Source of the DNA: Zygnema circumcarinatum SAG 698-1b
Lineage: Eukaryota > Plantae > Zygnematophyceae
DNA length: 64,000 nt
NCBI GenBank assembly: GCA_037447605.1
Contig: CM074805.1
Coordinates: forward strand, 4,683,361 to 4,747,360
Reading direction: 5' to 3'
Part shown: positions 17,078 through 26,186 of the stretch, in pieces
How the letters are laid out: every line of letters starts with the position of its first letter
Position numbering within the stretch: the first letter of the stretch is position 1
Position numbers and translations under genes: made by a program
Notes under the pieces: generated by a model
Database searches by the model: none
The model's input: the letters and a program-made list of their open reading frames with translations, nothing else
Told to the model about the DNA's origin: nothing

Positions 17078-17109
<32 letters not shown>

Positions 17110-17692
17110 CCGCACGATAGCGCTGCCCGTCTTCGCTCAAAAAAAAATTACCTCAAAAAAAGAACAGAAACAAAAATCTTTTCAACCAATGGCGCTCCCC
17201 GCATTCGACTTCCCGAAAAAGAAAATCGTACCAAGAAAACAGAAGAACAGACCGAAAAAAATGATCAAAACAAAAAAAATGCCGCGCTTCCCCGCGTCCT
17301 CCTGTCGTCCCCGGCGGCGTCCCTCCGTCCGCCACGTCGTCCCCGGGCGGCGCGCGCTCGGGCCGGCACGTGGCAGCGCCGAGGAAGACGGGCGCCCCCT
17401 CCCGCACTGAGGCCGCCCGGGCGCGCCCTTGTAGGGTTTTGGCAGGATCTTGAAGAATCTTGGAGGGAGGGAGAGAGGGTTTTGGAGCAGGCTGAGGCTG
17501 GGAGCAATAGTTGCTGCTGCTGGAGGAAGGGAGGGAGGAAGGGAGGGAGGGAGGGAGGGCGGAGAGAGGAGGGAGGCGTGGGAGGGAGGAAAGAATCTTG
17601 GAGGGAAGACGGAGGCAGGGTTTTGGAGCAGGCTGGAAGGAGGAGTTGCTGCTGCAGAAGGGAGGAAAACAGGGAAAGGAGGTGGTAGAGGA

Positions 17693-20600
17693 ATGGGTAT
17701 GGGGAGAGCGGGAGAAGGAGGGGGGAGCGGCGGCGGGAGTAGCAGTGGTGGCTCGGCGGTATCGGAGGGGAGCAGTCTGGGAGAGGGAGCGATACTGGAG
17801 GAGGAGGAGACGGATTTTGTAGATTGTCTGCATCCGCTGCCTGGATGGATGGTGCAGGCGGTGCGGAGGATGGAGGTCGCAGGGGAGGCGGGCATGTGGT
17901 CGTCGGCGAACGGTGTTGGGATTCGGCTGCAAGGATGGGCGGACACCATACAGGATATTGAGCAGTTTGTGCATTTGCCAACTGTTTGCCCAGGCTGCGA
18001 GCAGGTACTTGATCTTATTGTAACGGCTGGGAGCGCTAAGAGACTTCAGGAATTGTACTGAGTAGGGCATCTTTTTGCCTGGCTTGATCGTGTTTACTGT
18101 GTGAGAATAGGAGTCTTCTTTGCAAGCTGCAGAGGGCTCAGATGATAGGGGCCGTAAGGTTGCTCACGTTTCAGTCTACTGATTTGACAGGAAATGCGTA
18201 ACGGTGGGAGTAACCGTCAAGATTCTCGGAGCTGCAGTCATCCGGCGTTTCTTGCAGCTCTCAGAAGGTATAACTTTTCCTTATTTCTTGGTTGAACCTT
18301 AGAGATTGTCCACTTGTTTCTTTCCTCCAAAGCAGCACACTGGTGAAGCCTTTTGATCTGAGGTTAATCCTGTCACTTGGCTGAGTCTTGGTTCAGAGGA
18401 GTGTCGGTGAAAGATGCCGAGGCGTTGATATGCCGACATCAATCGTCCGACGAGTGTTTCTTTGCGCTTGAAGTGTTGGCCAGCCTCGTACAGGTAACGT
18501 CACATTTAGTTTGTGTGGCTATCTGCAATTGTAGTTTCTTCTCTCTTTGGCGTGTTTACAGTTTGAATCGTAACTGACCGCAGGAGGAAGAATGGATGTT
18601 CTCCAAAGGAGACGGGCAGGCAAGCGAACACTTAGGCTGCTTGAAGCACTACTTGAACCAACATTTTCTGCGCCTTGTAAGTTAATCTGTTCACTGCGTG
18701 CGTGTACAGAGTATTGTCTTGAATTCACGAAGTTAGCAATTGATTGCGCCTGCTTATTCGCACTGAAGCAATGTATCAAGCTCTTTCCTTTGAGTGACTT
18801 AGTGTTGTGGCGACACCTGAGCCACATCAGTCTTGAGGCGGTCGGAGAATACTAGATATCTGAATGTCTTTTTGGACGGAAATTTGCAGTGACGCTGTAG
18901 CAGATTTCAGGAGGTGCAATCAGTTCACGAACTCCCTGAAGGCTCTAGGGCCGCCTTATTCAGGGTCCGCAATCTATGCAGGGCCTAATAATCACGTGCT
19001 GCCTGTGAGATTGCTATCTTAGTGGACGACTACGATGTGTTTTTGTTGCAGGCGGAGGAAGGAAAAGTGGTCCAGTGCTTCGATGATCGTGGACAGGCGC
19101 AGTGGGCAGTGTTTTGCACAGGACTACTGACCCGTGGCACGGAAGAGCCTATTTTTGCTGTCTTGCAGGTATGTGGTTCATGTTCTTGGAACCGTAGTTT
19201 CGTGGGAGACAGTCCAGACATGACTAGTTTCATTAGTGGATTGCCTTTCGCAGTTTTATTTTTAACTTCTGGTCGGATTCATACGCACTGATTGTTCCTC
19301 TCTCGATCATTTCTTTCTTCTGCAATTTTGCAGATGTGCATTAGGTTTACTGGAGTGGTAGTTTTTGCTGAGCCTTTGTGATTGTTGTTGTTATACTCCA
19401 TTCTCGCTTGTGCTATCCCGCTGTTTTCCTGAAGCCTACAGAACTCTACTCACAAGTGTACTGTTCTGGAAGACTCACAGTTTTGCATGTCATTTGGATA
19501 TGCTTAGCTGACATTACGCTCTGTTCGTTTTTACCTTCTGATATACCATGTAACATAGTATAATGCGGCGTGTGATGCAGCGTTGTGCACGGACTTCAAC
19601 GGGATGGACATCATGGCAGCTGTTTGGTTTCGTCCCCCTTAGGAAACTGCAAGATCCGGCTCAGTTGTGGAACAAAGTGGAAGCTATCGTGACACCTCCA
19701 GAGCAGGTTAGTAGGGAGTGTCTTTCGAGACCTGGAAAACCGAATCTCCGGCCCTACTGATATGGCTGCTTGGGTAGTGAGTACTGCTGTAGTGAGTTTC
19801 CTCGGTTTGTTACTTGTCGTGGGGAAGGATATGATTGAAAATTTTGAGATCCTGCAGGCGAATTTTGTAGAGGACCAGTCGGATCTGCTGTATGCTGGGG
19901 GCATCTCCGTTGACGCTCTGCAGCTGCATCCTCAGGTATGCTTGTCCCAGGCTGTGCAAATCCTGTTTTGTTGCACAATGTTGTCATTCCACTGTATTGA
20001 TGTTCACGAGTTAGTCTTAGCAGAATCAATGTTGTTACGGGGTGCAGCTTTGGGAGGACCTGGAGTCCCATTTGGAAGCTTTTCCTTCCTCGCTACTGGA
20101 GCCTGGGATTACTGCACAGGTGGGTTTAGTGAAAAGTACTCGTATTTGGAATCCACCCTTTCGTAGGTCTTTGGTTAGCTTTTTCTCATGAAGCTGCGAC
20201 CTTTCCTTTCCCTGTGAACAACCACACCCATTGAAGCAGGTTTGAGCTTTTGTACATCCGATGCTGGTTCAATGAATGAGAGAGAGAATAAACTTATGTG
20301 AGAGTGAATAAAGTTTTCTGAAATTTTGCTCTCAACCATTTCAATTTGGCTCTCCTCATCAAAAAGCTTTTTTGAGTCTTCCTTGTACAGAGGTTTTGAG
20401 TTACTGAGGTTGGGCAAATGAAGTGGCTGCAGGGTCGAAAGCAAGTGGCCATGGCAGCAGTTGGACGAGCTATACAAACTGTTGGCCATAACCCCTTTGC
20501 AGCAGTGCCTATGGTACAGCGCAGCGTTGTTTCGAACGCTCCAGTCATGCAGGTAGGCAGTACTCTCCTATACCTTTCTGTTTTCCGTCATCCACCTATT

Positions 20601-23600
20601 CATCGTAGTGGCGCTGTTCTGATCTTCGGTGCAGGTACAAATTATATTGTACGCTGAATTGTCGCTTGCGACTGATTTAAAATTTTGTCTCTGGAGTTGT
20701 TGCAGTTACAATTGCTGCTGCCTTTGAAGCTGGATTCAGAGTCTTCTCGTGCCCATCTAGCCTTGGCGGTAGAAGCATCAAAGTCTCGGCGAGGGTAAGT
20801 CTGCCACTGTATCTCCTTTATTAGTCCTAAAGTCTCAAACAGACTGAATCTGTGTGATCCAGAACATGTTGGACTCATTCAGGTTGATTTCCTTGCTGGT
20901 TCTCGAAAACAGGACTTCTTAGAGACACAGGTCATTTAGTCGCTGAGCTTGCGAAGGATAATGATTGTTTGGCGGTACGGATTAATCTGCGAAGAATGAA
21001 CTGGGTCCTTCTTAACTTTTAGTTGCCAACCTGTACAGTGTGGACCCTTTGTCTGCTGCTGCAGGGCACGCATGTACCGTGCAACGCGCGTCTTATCTCT
21101 CGAACAGGCATACATGCAGGCGCGGGTCCTGATGCCAGTATGCCAACCTTGGTTGGCTGCTGCTGTCAGAAATCGCCATACATCAAATTCTACAACAGAT
21201 CGGTCAGGGGATCAGTTTAATGCAGCTTGCCTTCCATCAGCAGCAGTACTGCAAGAAGCTTTAGAAGCGCAGGATCTGCCCATGAGGGAAGGGTCGTTGC
21301 CCATGAGGAGCACGTTGTCCGGAGGGTCCCATTCTGCACCTTACCTTTACAGCCCTTCGATGGGATCCCATCCTTCACCTCGATCAGTGACCAGTTCAGG
21401 ATCAACGCTACCTGAAATGGCAAGCTTTCTGCCTTCGCAGCAGCAGCATTATGCTATGGCCACGTCTGCTGTTGGAAATCCACGGAGCCCTTCATCTGAA
21501 GGAGTTCGTCCTTCATCTGGACTTCCTAGTGGGGCTGGTGGTCTAGTCCAAGCTGGGAGTGAGGGGCTACCCTACAGCCCAAGTGGGAGCTCTAGTGGTC
21601 GATCCGAGGTAGTACAAGTTCCGACTTTTCCTTCGTCCCTTCCCGGCGCTGTTGTCTCTGTCGGTGGGGGAGGAATATCAGTGTTCCATGCCCGAGAGGG
21701 GAGTGCATCCGTTGGGGGCCTGCCATCCCCTCGCCTCCGACATAGTAGCAGTCTCCCTGCGGGATATGCTTCAGGAATGCGGCGGAGCCATGGTGAATAT
21801 CACAGCGATCCTGGTCTTGGCCAGCTTTCTGAGAAGAAAAGCTACAGCACAAGCTCGTGGCACTTACAAGGCTACGATGATCCCCTTTCTCCCATGCGAC
21901 CTACGGGGAGGTTCGAGGGAAGGTCACTTCTGCCATTAGACATTCCGGAGACATCAAACACTGTGCAGGTGAGTGGAAAAACGTTTGAGGATCTTTTCTG
22001 AAAAATTACAACCAACGTGACTGCCTGTTGAGTCGTTAGTGTGTGATGATGTTACGTATAACTTTGTTCCTTATGGCAGTGGTGAATGTGTGAGTTGGGA
22101 TGATCTCGGCAATGTTTCTCACCTTATGGAGGTTGACCTCTATGCAGGTTTTGTCGCTGAGTCCAGTACCAGGAGGGGGTGACAGCAAGACATCAAGCTA
22201 TGCAGGTGAGCGATGGTTACAATATCAGTTAATCAGGCTAGCAACTGTTCAATGCCTGGCAATGTTTTCAGCTATCACTTTTTTAATTAGTCCACTTCTC
22301 GGTTTTTGCCCTATTTATGCAGGCAATCTTGGCGGCCACTCATGGGGCACAGCAGGCGGCTCTGTGTCGAGTGCATTGTTGGGCACAACGGTGGATGGAA
22401 GCTTTTCCTCCAATGGACAAATGTCTTCAGAGCATGGAAGTCATTTGACATTGTCCCCGGCACACATGAATGGAAGTACTTTTGGCGGTCTCACGTACCG
22501 CAGTGACAGCGTGGAGAGGCTCTGGACTGGTGGCATTGACTACGATTCCATGGGCGGTCGGGCGGATGAGTACGTCGAGTTTACACCACAAGACGATCTG
22601 TAAGTGGGCCTGTTCCGTTAGGGTTTGTCGGGCTATCAGGGTTCTCTCATTTTCGGTTGCCTCCACCTTAGTAGAGTGTTGTGGTGAGTAGTAATGATTA
22701 GTGTAAGCAACAATTATTTTTTCTTGGCGGCTGTTGTAATATTTGTGGTGTAACTTGTTTCATTCTTTAAGTTTGTGTTGGTGGCGGGGGGGGTTGCAGG
22801 TGCCCTAAACTAAACATTTCGCAGCTGCCACCTATGTGAGTGTTGACTTCTGTCAAGCCTGCTACGTCGGTGTGAATATTGACGTTGATTGTGTCTGTTT
22901 TTCCCTCTTTTTTTCCCTCCCTCTCACCGTTTGTCACTGCTTTTTTTCTCGCCTTTTCCTTATTCGTTTGTGTTATCTGCCCAAAGAGTCATGTTTGTCT
23001 TTCCTGTTCTCTTTCTGCTTTTTTTTCCTACATCTGTGTTTGCGCGCTCTTTGAGTGCTCCTGCATGTCTGTTCGTGGTCTATCTATCTATCTATCTGCT
23101 TGTCTGCATCTTTGTTATTCTTCTTCCTCTGTACTTCGTGCATCGTTTGTCTCTGGTGATCCCATTTCGCAACTGAATTGTTGTCGTGAGCTTCTGGGTG
23201 GTTGTCAATATAGAGCGCTTCGAGGTGCTGACCGTTTCATGCTGACTCTGTCGATGCAGGTTTGTACATGACTTCTACACGGGGAAAAATGCCTATGGTG
23301 AAGTGTGAGTACCTGAAGAGGACTCCTGCCGTTGCTACGGAATATTGTGCAGTGTATCCAGTCCATTGTTGTCAAGCTCAGTATCTCTTCCGCATGCAAG
23401 TTTTTCAGATTTTTTGCAGTTTCTATCGGTTTGAGGACTTTGGATTGCTGTATTTCAAAGGTCAAACTCCCATGTATTGCACGAATTGATGGGAGAGAAT
23501 TTGTTGGGAAATTTGCAGGACGGCTGTGAACCATTTTGAGCAAGTATTTTCTGAATATGGCCTGGTAACCAAGGTAGTATCTCGGGAGCATTCCAAGCAT

Positions 23601-24307
23601 CAGGGCAAGTTCTTCGCAATTGTGGAGTTCCAATATTGGAGGGATGAGATGACCCGCGCCCGGCTTGTTGCAGGAGAGCAGATCTGCTTCCAAAGGTTCT
23701 ATAGTGAGTAAACAAAATTCCTTCCCCCCTCTCTTTTCGTGCAACTTGCTGTATTTCCGAAAGTTTTGTGGGAGCAAGAGTTCAGATAATCAGCAGCAGC
23801 CCCTTCTTCTTCGTTCCTTGAAAGTCTCCCAGTTTCGGAAGCTCACACTCCTTTCTGGGAAAGAAATGTGCTCGTGTGGACTTTTGCCGAACTAACAACT
23901 TCACGCCGCTCTTTCTTATAGAAACCGAGGAGGTCTTGATTCGGCGCCACAAAGACAAGCATAAGGTCACTCTCTCCGCCTCGGCCTCTCTCTGCCGCCC
24001 CGACTGGAAGTACACCGGAATTGATACACGCACAGGGAAGCCCCTTTACAAGGGGCCCTGCAGCAACTGCACCCGTGAGTGTACTGTTCCTTTCAAGCCC
24101 GTGGTGAAAGGGCAGCCCCCGCGCTGCCGGGCCTGCCTCCCCTATGTTATGGGGGGGCTCTTTGGAGCCACTTCTCAGAATGGGGCCTCGAGTTTGGTCA
24201 GCCCACTTTCCCCCCATCCATCCATGGGCACCTCAGGGCTTCAATACAGCCACCCAACTGCTCACTTTATGGAGCCGGGACCGGTTTTGACACTGGGACG
24301 GTGCTGA
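17693..24307 (+). CDS. Multi-exon protein: DUF3825-like domain + Ser/Pro/Gly-rich linker + RRM + CxxC-x17-CxxC-like zinc ribbon
   Basis: Exons: 17693-18004, possible micro-exon 18133-18153, 18191-18267, 18397-18493, 18584-18676, 19052-19168, 19581-19706, 19858-19935, 20048-20119, 20409-20552, 20706-20794, 21065-21968, 22148-22205, 22323-22599, 23260-23304, 23519-~23700, 23833-24307. The spliced product gives EEEWMF...LKHYLNQHFLRL|AEEGKVV...WAVFCTGLLTRGTEEPIFAVLQ|...WQLFGF...|ANFVEDQSDLLY...|...HLEAFPSSLL...|...AVGRAIQTVGHNPFAAVP...|LQLLLPLKL...AHLALAVE...|...YRATRVLSLEQAYMQARVLMPVCQPWL, the DUF3825 motif order as I recall it. The RRM is DLFVHDF...FEQVFSEYGLVTKV...FFAIVEF...FLGKKCARVDF. The terminal motif is CSNCTRECTVPFKPVVKGQPPRCRAC. 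Confidence 0.8.
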
Positions 24308-26186
24308 GGGGGAAGGAGGGAGGGAGATGGAGGGGGGTGGAGAGGTGTGCGGGGAGAGAGAGGAAATGGAACCGAGAAGTGGGCGAGGGGGTGGAAAAGG
24401 AGGTGAGGGCCTGAGGGGTTCATAGAGAATTGGGGGAGAAGAAGAAGGAGATGAAGGAGAAGAAGACGAAGACGAAGACGAAGAGGAGAGGAGAGGAGAG
24501 GGAAAGAGGGGGAGAGAAATGGAGAGAGGGGGGAGAGTGGAAGAGGAGAGGCAAATGGTCGAGCCTTTTCCATGGAGGGAGGAGGTTTATTATTTTGGAG
24601 AGGGTGCTGCGACGACACGCGGATTTGTTTCTTTTTAACGGGTGGTGTGATTTGTGATTTTTTCTTTCTCAAAAAAATTGGAGAACCATATCACTAGGAG
24701 GAAACAATACTGGAGAATTTGACCGCCTTTTTTTTCTCCAGTTTTTCGATTTCCTATTTGATTTCGAATCTATTTATGGATTGGAATGGACGACTTTCAA
24801 GGGATCCCAGATGGACGTAATTTCATTTCTCCGAGGGCGGGACACAGGGGGAGAGAGAGAGAGAGAGTGAGAAAGAGAGGGGGAGCTTCTCCACCGCCTC
24901 GGGAGGTATAACGAAATTGTTTAGCATTTTATGGAGGAAGTGTAAATTTTTTGGTACGGCTATTTCACTAGCGAGGGGGAACATTTTTACTTTTTTTTTT
25001 ATTTATTTGTGGGGTTTTGCTCATTGCTTACTATCCTTACCATTGATATGTGACATGACGTGGTGTGACCAGGGGTTCAGACCACGCTTGTTGGGCCACT
25101 TGCCGTACGCCGTCAGAAGGAACAAACTTGCACGTAGCAGGAATAGGGTCTATAAATGGGGTCCAAAATAGGGTGTACCAAGTTATAGAGAGGTGTACCT
25201 AGCTGCCCAGCGGGCCCGTGTGCAGGAAAGTGTATATGTCGATTGGGTCTCGCCAATGGGAACGTGTCTAGCTTGTTGCTATGCAGCTGCTGTTCATACA
25301 TTGGATTTTCTTAATGTAAGCAATTTTTGTTTTTTTATTGTTTTCTATGTATTGTTTTGTGTTTTGTTCTTTTATTTTAGTTTTGTGGGGCGGTGAGATT
25401 TGGGTTCTCTGTTGGGGAGCGTGAGAAGGGGGTCTCGTCACCTTGTACTCGTGTTTGAAATGTCTCTTCTGATTCGTGTTTTCATGGTATGCTGTGGTCT
25501 CGGGGTAATTCTCTGGAAATTCCCTCAAATGGAAATTTGAGGGTTCGGTCTGCTTCCTCTAACATGCTACGGTTTTAAATAGGAGGTTTCGGACATGAAA
25601 AAGACTATATGAAGTTTGATTTAAAGGGATACTCTGGATTTCTTTGTTTACTACCTATCTTGTGGAAAAGTATGTACTAATTTCGATTCCGAAAATGCGG
25701 AACTTGGGTGGAACTTTTTCTGGTTTTGAATCCTCATTGTGCTTTCAGCCAGCCACCACCTGTTATTAACACCATCCTGCTCGTCCCCAGCAATCTTACC
25801 TCTTTCTTTTTGGTACCAATCTGCCGTATATAAGTTTTTCCCTATTGCACCGGTTGTCAGAGAAACTATTGGAAAGGATTGGCAGTGATCTCATAGAAAC
25901 GGTTCCCAATGGGAAAACAATTCCTTTGGTTCCCCATGTTGATTCTATCCATGTACATTTGATGGCTTTGCGACCTGTCCCTCGTGGTTCCCCATGCTGC
26001 TTTTGTCCATGTACATTTGATGGCCTCGCCATCGTGAGTTCAATGCCATTTTCTTTATCTCCTTTGTCCATCGTGAGATCAATAGAAGGAGATGTGGCAT
26101 TGATGTCACGATGGCGAGATGAGCTCAATGCTATCTCTCCGCGAAAAACAGAGGGGTAGGTTTTTTTTTTTTTTTTCTTGAAAGGG

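Follow-up and report, generated by a model that had tools for sequence, protein, structure and literature searches.

A described analogue of the protein considered here is MARF1/Limkain b1, in which an NYN/LK-nuclease domain of bacterial affinity is likewise combined with an RRM and further RNA-binding modules, in that case OST-HTH/LOTUS domains (PMC2848206). The likeness is one of functional analogy only and not of family membership, since MARF1/Limkain b1 has a PIN/NYN fold rather than DUF3825, and LOTUS domains rather than a zinc ribbon. DUF3825 (PF12873) is otherwise found in bacterial, plasmid and phage proteins that stand alone at 250-370 residues or carry an N-terminal cold-shock domain (CSD) or OST-HTH domain, and that lack an RRM, a ribbon and a linker. 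The CxxC-x17-CxxC zinc ribbon (zf_Tbcl_2; PF23477, TIGR04272) belongs to bacteria and archaea, and zinc binding has been demonstrated for two small proteins of Methanosarcina mazei (PMC12704099). We analyzed a 64,000-nucleotide stretch, hereafter the window, of the zygnematophyte alga Zygnema circumcarinatum SAG 698-1b (GCA_037447605.1, contig CM074805.1, positions 4,683,361 to 4,747,360, forward strand), in which one gene at 17693-24307 encodes DUF3825, RRM and ribbon together. It is a member of an old, uncharacterized protein family found in green algae as well as in at least one land plant, and an undescribed eukaryotic form of a known but uncharacterized domain family. The locus is one expressed nuclear gene, and the family to which it belongs is old in the green lineage and has a fixed module layout; taken as a whole, the evidence makes it probable that the protein is directed at RNA and that the gene derives from one ancient transfer.

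A sequence-only reading of the window had proposed a gene with these bounds and 16-17 frame-consistent exons, and RNA evidence agrees with it. Logan contigs from four RNA runs in three studies, mapped across 17960-23959, define 17 exons and 16 GT..AG introns on the forward strand; 15 of the joints are listed at equal depth in all four runs, and the remaining one (20119/20433) was derived from the coordinates of the contig pieces together with a GT/AG check. A single contig of 3776 nt carries all 17 exons, and the DUF3825, RRM and zinc-ribbon parts therefore share one transcript, which disposes of the possibility, raised earlier, that DUF3825 and RRM come from separate transcripts. The joined exons form one frame of 1071 codons, open up to the 5' end of the contig, with the first ATG at 17693 and the stop codon at 24305-24307, giving an uninterrupted open reading frame of 1023 codons and a protein of 1023 residues. 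Word depth in the four runs is 150-294 for spliced contigs versus 2-15 for contigs that cover introns, showing that the gene is expressed and efficiently spliced. The low-depth contigs, found in all four runs at 18010-18172, 18648-19081, 19141-19605, 20091-20459, 20766-21093 and 22808-23253, could represent unspliced precursor or trace genomic DNA.

Homologues with the same layout occur across the green lineage, contrary to the earlier view, by which no described plant protein was known to have this architecture. One of them, P0001, was found with phmmer against 1.84 billion representatives; it has 994 residues, derives from a transcript contig of a related species and matches the window protein from end to end at 70% identity. 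The lycophyte Diphasiastrum complanatum has the same module order and motifs (KAJ7535799.1, encoded on a chromosome record of 59 Mb), as does a partial protein of Klebsormidium nitens (GAQ92929.1, KFL_012070010). Chara braunii CBR_g16090 shares the layout; its deposited model ends after the RRM (…FYA), before the ribbon exon, probably through truncation of the annotation. Several transcript-derived proteins have the layout as well, as does a metagenomic cluster represented by a 21-kb contig from a compact, intron-less eukaryotic genome that also bears symplekin, DEAD helicase, B9-C2 and pyruvate kinase genes, and a shape search of the ESM Atlas returned DUF3825 proteins of 736 residues in a Chlorophyta-labelled cluster with 200 members. 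The family layout runs from a variable N-terminus through DUF3825, a disordered linker and an RRM-fold domain to a basic patch and a ribbon of the PF23477 type, and the motifs PKLNI..LP..FV, FAIVEF, RRHxDK and CxxC-x18-CxxC are common to the family. The lycophyte gene also has 17 exons, while chlorophyte-type genes are intron-less and lack the N-terminal CxxC region of streptophytes. Every orthologue is named only 'hypothetical' or 'DUF3825 domain-containing'. Word-index protein searches, in which low-complexity words of the linker swamped the candidates, returned only P0001 and the Chara protein.

This distribution bears on whether two neighboring genes, one for DUF3825 and one for the RRM and ribbon, have been read as one, or whether the locus is bacterial contamination. 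The one observation in favor is that some database fragments hold the RRM-ribbon part by itself (P0005, 395 aa); however, the cluster of P0005 includes an 821-residue member with DUF3825, the same fusion occurs in the intron-less chlorophyte-type gene and on a lycophyte chromosome, and at the locus itself one RNA contig joins 17 exons in an open frame across 16 spliceosomal introns. An artefact of either kind was rejected on the strength of that contig, and its likelihood is negligible.

The gene is under purifying selection and is ancient in green plants. Between the window gene and the P0001 transcript, synonymous divergence (Ks) is saturated and nonsynonymous divergence (Ka) is 0.03-0.29; protein identity is 96% in the zinc ribbon, 86% in the RRM, 77% in DUF3825 and 63% in the linker. 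Eleven of the 16 lycophyte introns match those of the window gene in both alignment column and phase, and two more differ only through alignment gaps; the fused gene must thus have carried introns before this alga and vascular plants diverged. The Diphasiastrum gene (CM055103.1) covers ~10 kb; its introns reach 3.5 kb, and its linker exon holds one intron more than that of the alga. Thus the gene has not been lost from all land plants: the age proposed in the sequence-only reading stands, whereas its loss in land plants must be narrowed to loss in most of them at most. The extent of that loss is read from a single phmmer search, made with the ribbon exon only, in which no other land-plant clusters were found. 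Such patchy retention, in algae and a lycophyte and in no other land plants in this one search, offers a marker for gene loss during plant terrestrialization.

The affinity of DUF3825 to bacteria, also proposed earlier, is evident, nearly all other occurrences of the domain being in bacteria or phages. With bacterial seed proteins obtained by tblastn against plasmids and phages, a scan that took one genome for each prokaryotic species gave 584 relatives whose tree is mixed across phyla, and 144 further relatives lie on viral contigs of IMG/VR of up to 160 kb. One DUF3825 gene adjoins a helix-turn-helix (HTH) gene on the 3.1-kb ColE1-type Enterobacter plasmid pK666_3k, and another follows the lysin gene at the far end of the prophage Streptococcus phage Javan385; bacterial-type DUF3825 is strongly associated with mobile elements. 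In domain trees the 7-8 eukaryotic sequences form one clade on a long stem (Shimodaira-Hasegawa-like approximate likelihood ratio test, SH-aLRT, 100), divided into streptophyte and chlorophyte-type subgroups and nested within no sampled bacterial or phage group, the tree being unrooted and the bacterial sample biased to stand-alone forms. A scan with the eukaryotic alignment found no eukaryote-type DUF3825 in 185,579 prokaryotic genomes or 2.9 million viral contigs, including no giant-virus copy.

That DUF3825 is mainly carried by bacteria and phages and freely exchanged across bacterial phyla might suggest a recent horizontal transfer into the alga, a reading we consider very improbable and have discarded. 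Identity between eukaryotic and bacterial sequences is 24%, the eukaryotic ones stand together on their long stem, the lycophyte has the same fused architecture and most of the same intron positions, and none of the prokaryotic genomes or viral contigs scanned holds a eukaryote-type copy. The distribution would most likely go back to a single ancient transfer, by which an ancestor of green plants acquired DUF3825 from a bacterium or phage; fusion, vertical descent, gain of introns in streptophytes and loss in most land plants would then have followed. We infer the direction of this transfer from the distribution, given the unrooted tree.

Assignment of the domain to DUF3825 is secure. In Pfam and structure jobs the orthologue P0001 stood in for the window protein, whereas local hidden Markov model (HMM) and BLAST runs used the spliced window protein itself. 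Scanned exon by exon against the 238-position Pfam profile, the window gene gives four colinear DUF3825 matches (profile positions 7-35, 37-69, 185-210 and 211-238) that sum to ~68 bits against a gathering score of 27 bits, and an HMM built from 80 bacterial DUF3825 proteins only scores 94.3 bits to residues 153-426. P0001 scores 138.2 bits over positions 1-238. The PF12873 domain proposed earlier is thus present and complete. It begins at residue 153 (~18464, from the bacteria-only HMM) in exon 3 (18397-18493, residues 130-162) and continues, with exon bounds set by the RNA joints, through exon 4 (18584-18676; profile 7-35, 13.2 bits), exon 5 (19052-19168; profile 37-69, 17.3 bits, with the GKVVQ and F-C-T-G-L motifs), exons 6 (19581-19706, placed also by the bacterial HMM alignment) and 7 (19858-19935), which hold the middle part, exon 8 (20048-20119, its 3' joint being the one derived indirectly), exon 9 (20433-20552), which by model and bacterial HMM holds the helix and first strand of a RelE-like unit, exon 10 (20706-20794; profile 185-210, 17.2 bits, with QLLLPLK and the invariant His381) and the start of exon 11 (21065-21968; profile 211-238, 20.1 bits), where it ends at residue 426 (~21161).

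Homology to the bacterial, plasmid and phage proteins covers the full domain at ~24% identity and includes the shared motifs E-x-W, GKV, F-x-T-G-L, AVPQ, QLLLP, Y, L-x-x-A-Y-x-N-A-R and W-L. Lys198, Gln366, Tyr398, Tyr410 and Arg414 (window numbering, as throughout) are kept in bacteria and in the eukaryotic clade. In contrast, other polar residues that are near-invariant in bacteria are replaced in the window protein, which has Glu303, His308, Ala311, His381 and Cys215; the bacterial positions concerned are the His, Asn and Arg of HIxxDNxxRFP, where exon 8 reads WEDLESHLEAFP, the Asp before strand 3 of the second unit (now His381, invariant in the clade) and the Asn of FNTGL, in that order. 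A Thr is replaced in the clade as well. The eukaryotic clade has an invariant polar set of its own, comprising His381, the Lys of PLK, the Arg of G-x-R-x-Y and Arg336.

A structural model gives a first lead to the fold of a domain that is present in hundreds of bacterial species and many phages. The AlphaFold model of the orthologue's DUF3825, made from a six-sequence alignment, has a predicted local distance difference test score (pLDDT) of 66, rising to ~75 in the second half, and consists of two units, in each of which a helix leads into four antiparallel strands. The second half is predicted to have RelE/ParE (BECR) topology and in the model superposes on solved members, covering nearly the whole toxin chain of RelE/ParE and other BECR toxins (RelE, YoeB, YafQ, HigB, CdiA-CT, colicin E5). 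Shared features in the model are helices, a four-stranded antiparallel sheet and a C-terminal helix, and conserved Tyr, Tyr, Asn and Arg residues lie at the C-terminal end of the second unit, with Tyr and Arg placed near this end as in RelE. Two independent leads, to PBECR4 by language-model features and to MuF_C/PBECR2 by shape for the first unit, agree with a BECR-type model. Foldseek found no significant PDB match to the whole DUF3825 model, the RelE-like signal coming from the structural aligner alone, and DUF3825 has no sequence relatives in the PDB. DUF3825 differs from BECR toxins in its extra N-terminal alpha/beta unit and in having neither sequence-profile similarity to them nor an antitoxin partner, and a nuclease role is putative.

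It is rather unlikely, though a mediocre model leaves some room for it, that a common alpha/beta arrangement produced the RelE/ParE likeness by chance and that the function of DUF3825 is unrelated to RNA cleavage, in which case the link to RNA would come from the RRM and ribbon alone. An EndoU-like duplicated core was considered and set aside as unsupported by sequence, the halves showing no internal duplication.

The C-terminal modules are the most conserved part of the protein. The RRM is divided over four exons, and by sequence exon 16 alone scores 18.6 bits against the PF00076 (RRM_1) cut-off of 20.7; the homologue P0005 reaches 25.2 bits, and the family profile matches CIRBP weakly among PDB entries (E = 0.19). 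A confident model of the C-terminal module of the orthologue, based on a seven-sequence family alignment (pLDDT 82.7), has a beta-alpha-beta-beta-alpha-beta domain and, behind it, a three-stranded ribbon, and RRM domains make up most of its best matches in the PDB and Swiss-Prot (Foldseek probability up to 0.98, with 0.9-0.98 for those covering exon 16). The RRM proposed in the sequence-only reading is upheld by fold and is marginal by sequence. The domain is led in by the conserved EFTPQDD at the end of exon 13 (22323-22599), which otherwise encodes linker. Exon 14 (22800-22835), a micro-exon of 36 nt, supplies PKLNISQLPP, strand 1 at the RNP2 position by model, with invariant N, I, L and P; exon 15 (23260-23304), a micro-exon of 45 nt, supplies the modeled start of helix 1; exon 16 (23519-23703) forms the core with KFFAIVEF as RNP1; and the last strand lies in exon 17, whose coding part (23922-24307) continues with the basic RRHKDKHK patch, the zinc ribbon, a low-complexity tail and the stop codon. 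RNP2 reads L-N-I-S-Q-L, with an Asn at aromatic position 2 that is invariant in the family, and RNP1 reads K-F-F-A-I-V-E-F, with Phe retained at position 3 and Ile at position 5. The intron positions that flank both micro-exons are common to the lycophyte gene.

The ribbon module (~23996-24136) reads CSNC-x18-CRAC (24059-24136) with the VPFKP signature, so that the four-Cys ribbon of the earlier CxxC-x17-CxxC assignment holds while its spacing, 18 throughout the family, does not. Scores are also under the curated cut-offs (PF23477, 17.6 versus 27 bits; TIGR04272, 21.1 versus 36 bits). Nevertheless, 67 of the 83 further matches to the last exon in the phmmer search carry PF23477 (E down to 1e-10), and in the Atlas the nearest clusters consist of bacterial PF23477 proteins, with which the window ribbon shares two CxxC pairs and an intervening V-P-F-[KR]-P. 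It departs from that family, beyond its spacing, in being the C-terminal module of a 1023-residue eukaryotic protein, in which zinc binding is predicted, and in having a conserved R-x-x-W-x-x-T-G...G-K-x-L-Y-x-G hairpin ahead of it. Some metagenome and transcript proteins (P0010, 861 aa; P0044/P0110, 761-871 aa) that are long, GC-rich and probably eukaryotic bear this ribbon subtype once or twice, again behind a G-W…G-K hairpin but lacking DUF3825; one of them has a weak, sub-threshold PHD-finger match. By these sequence comparisons green algae seem to reuse the ribbon as a module.

With this composition the protein quite likely has an RNA-directed function. Selection of RNA would fall to the RRM and zinc ribbon, whose identity to the orthologue is 86-96%, with DUF3825 as an effector or a second binding module. 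Fusion of bacterial DUF3825 to a CSD was verified, and OST-HTH and CSD co-occur with it in Atlas clusters; thus DUF3825 accompanies RNA binders in both kingdoms. Bacteria pair it with N-terminal RNA binders (CSD, OST-HTH) and the green lineage, by the same logic, with an RRM and ribbon at the C-terminus. The link to OST-HTH proteins and RNA metabolism drawn in the sequence-only reading is upheld to this extent, whereas its statement that DUF3825 had been described as a putative enzymatic domain is not: no searchable paper in our literature search names DUF3825, PF12873 or IPR024437, and the OST-HTH paper (PMC2848206) treats DUF88/LK-nuclease rather than DUF3825.

Whether DUF3825 still acts as an endoribonuclease here is doubtful, the odds being lowered because the eukaryotic clade has replaced one half of those polar residues that are near-invariant in bacterial members. 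These replacements, which hold throughout the clade, weigh against an active nuclease together with three negative results: permissive Pfam scans of 10 C-terminal halves gave no profile link to RelE/ParE and returned only DUF3825 and DUF7668 (E = 0.2); profile-profile comparison of the two halves of DUF3825 gave no internal duplication; and no conserved neighbor gene, whether for an antitoxin, an immunity protein or any other family, was found across 80 bacterial loci, the largest neighbor cluster having three members. DUF3825 is also absent from the defense components of PADLOC. Calling the protein an enzyme, as was done earlier, thus goes further than what has been shown. We regard as unlikely the most far-reaching proposal, namely that DUF3825 is an unrecognized BECR-type RNase module of phages, plasmids and bacteria, captured about a billion years ago by an ancestor of green plants, fused to an RRM and a prokaryote-type zinc ribbon, kept as an active RNA-guided endonuclease and later lost in most land plants.

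It is quite possible, on the other hand, that eukaryotic DUF3825 is catalytically dead and that the protein is an RNA- or ribosome-binding adaptor in which this domain provides a second binding or oligomerization surface. Such a reading is consistent with the change of the His, Asn and Arg of HIxxDNxxRFP, of the near-invariant Asp and of a Thr, with the stronger conservation of the RRM and ribbon than of DUF3825, and with the existence of ParE-type members of the BECR fold that lack RNase residues (PMC11980606). However, the eukaryotic clade has its own invariant His381, PLK Lys, G-x-R-x-Y Arg and Arg336, it retains Lys198, Gln366, Tyr398, Tyr410 and Arg414 as in bacteria, and its DUF3825 is 77% identical between two species despite saturated Ks; moreover, BECR RNases vary their catalytic residues widely (bioRxiv 10.64898/2026.08.28.747851). 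The gene defines a conserved, expressed and uncharacterized green-lineage family, predicted to bind RNA, with a clear module structure. If DUF3825 cuts RNA, a conflict-system nuclease would have been turned into a eukaryotic RNA-processing factor, and a toxin-fold RNase would be domesticated within a conserved protein of this kind; if it does not, a nuclease fold would have been reused as a binding module.

The N-terminus of the protein is lineage-specific. Exon 1 (17693-18004, residues 1-104; joint 18004/18191 with GT..AG in four runs) encodes the start codon, a Gly/Ser-rich N-terminus, CPGC and a GMWS..G..LQGW motif that is conserved among streptophyte orthologues, and exon 2 (18191-18267) encodes residues 105-130, with intron position and phase as in Diphasiastrum. 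Residues 1-152, where a putative helical region had been proposed, have no match in Pfam, in the Atlas or in the N-terminal extensions of longer bacterial DUF3825 forms; a Pfam scan of residues 1-160, in the window protein as in its orthologues, gave no match, OST-HTH included, and Atlas scores there are at noise level. A CxxC followed by a spaced Cys (…C-P-G-C…C-S-H-P…) at residues ~100-127 (17990-18004 and 18191-18265) is kept in P0001, Chara and Diphasiastrum and missing from chlorophyte-type members, and may, to judge from this pattern, form an extra small metal-binding knuckle. The linker, which was correctly recognized as Ser/Pro/Gly low-complexity sequence, occupies residues 427-795 (369 residues; 20% Ser, 14% Gly, 8% Pro), encoded by most of exon 11, exon 12 (22148-22205) and exon 13; it is constrained between close species, yet its length (~170-370 residues) and composition vary strongly family-wide. 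The linker might, as proposed earlier, drive condensates.

An Rfam scan found no RNA family in the window. From the length of the 3776-nt contig the transcript extends from at least as far upstream as 17549 to ~24867. The 5' untranslated region (UTR) covers at minimum 17549-17692, the contig reaching 453 nt into exon 1, and the 3' UTR covers 24308-24867, 946 nt of the contig lying past joint 23703/23922. Purine-rich low-complexity DNA brackets the transcript, with GGAG microsatellites in the 5' UTR (tandem repeats at 17522-17591) and GA-rich repeats in the 3' UTR (24437-24551), and upstream of the gene lies an A29 homopolymer (17078-17106).

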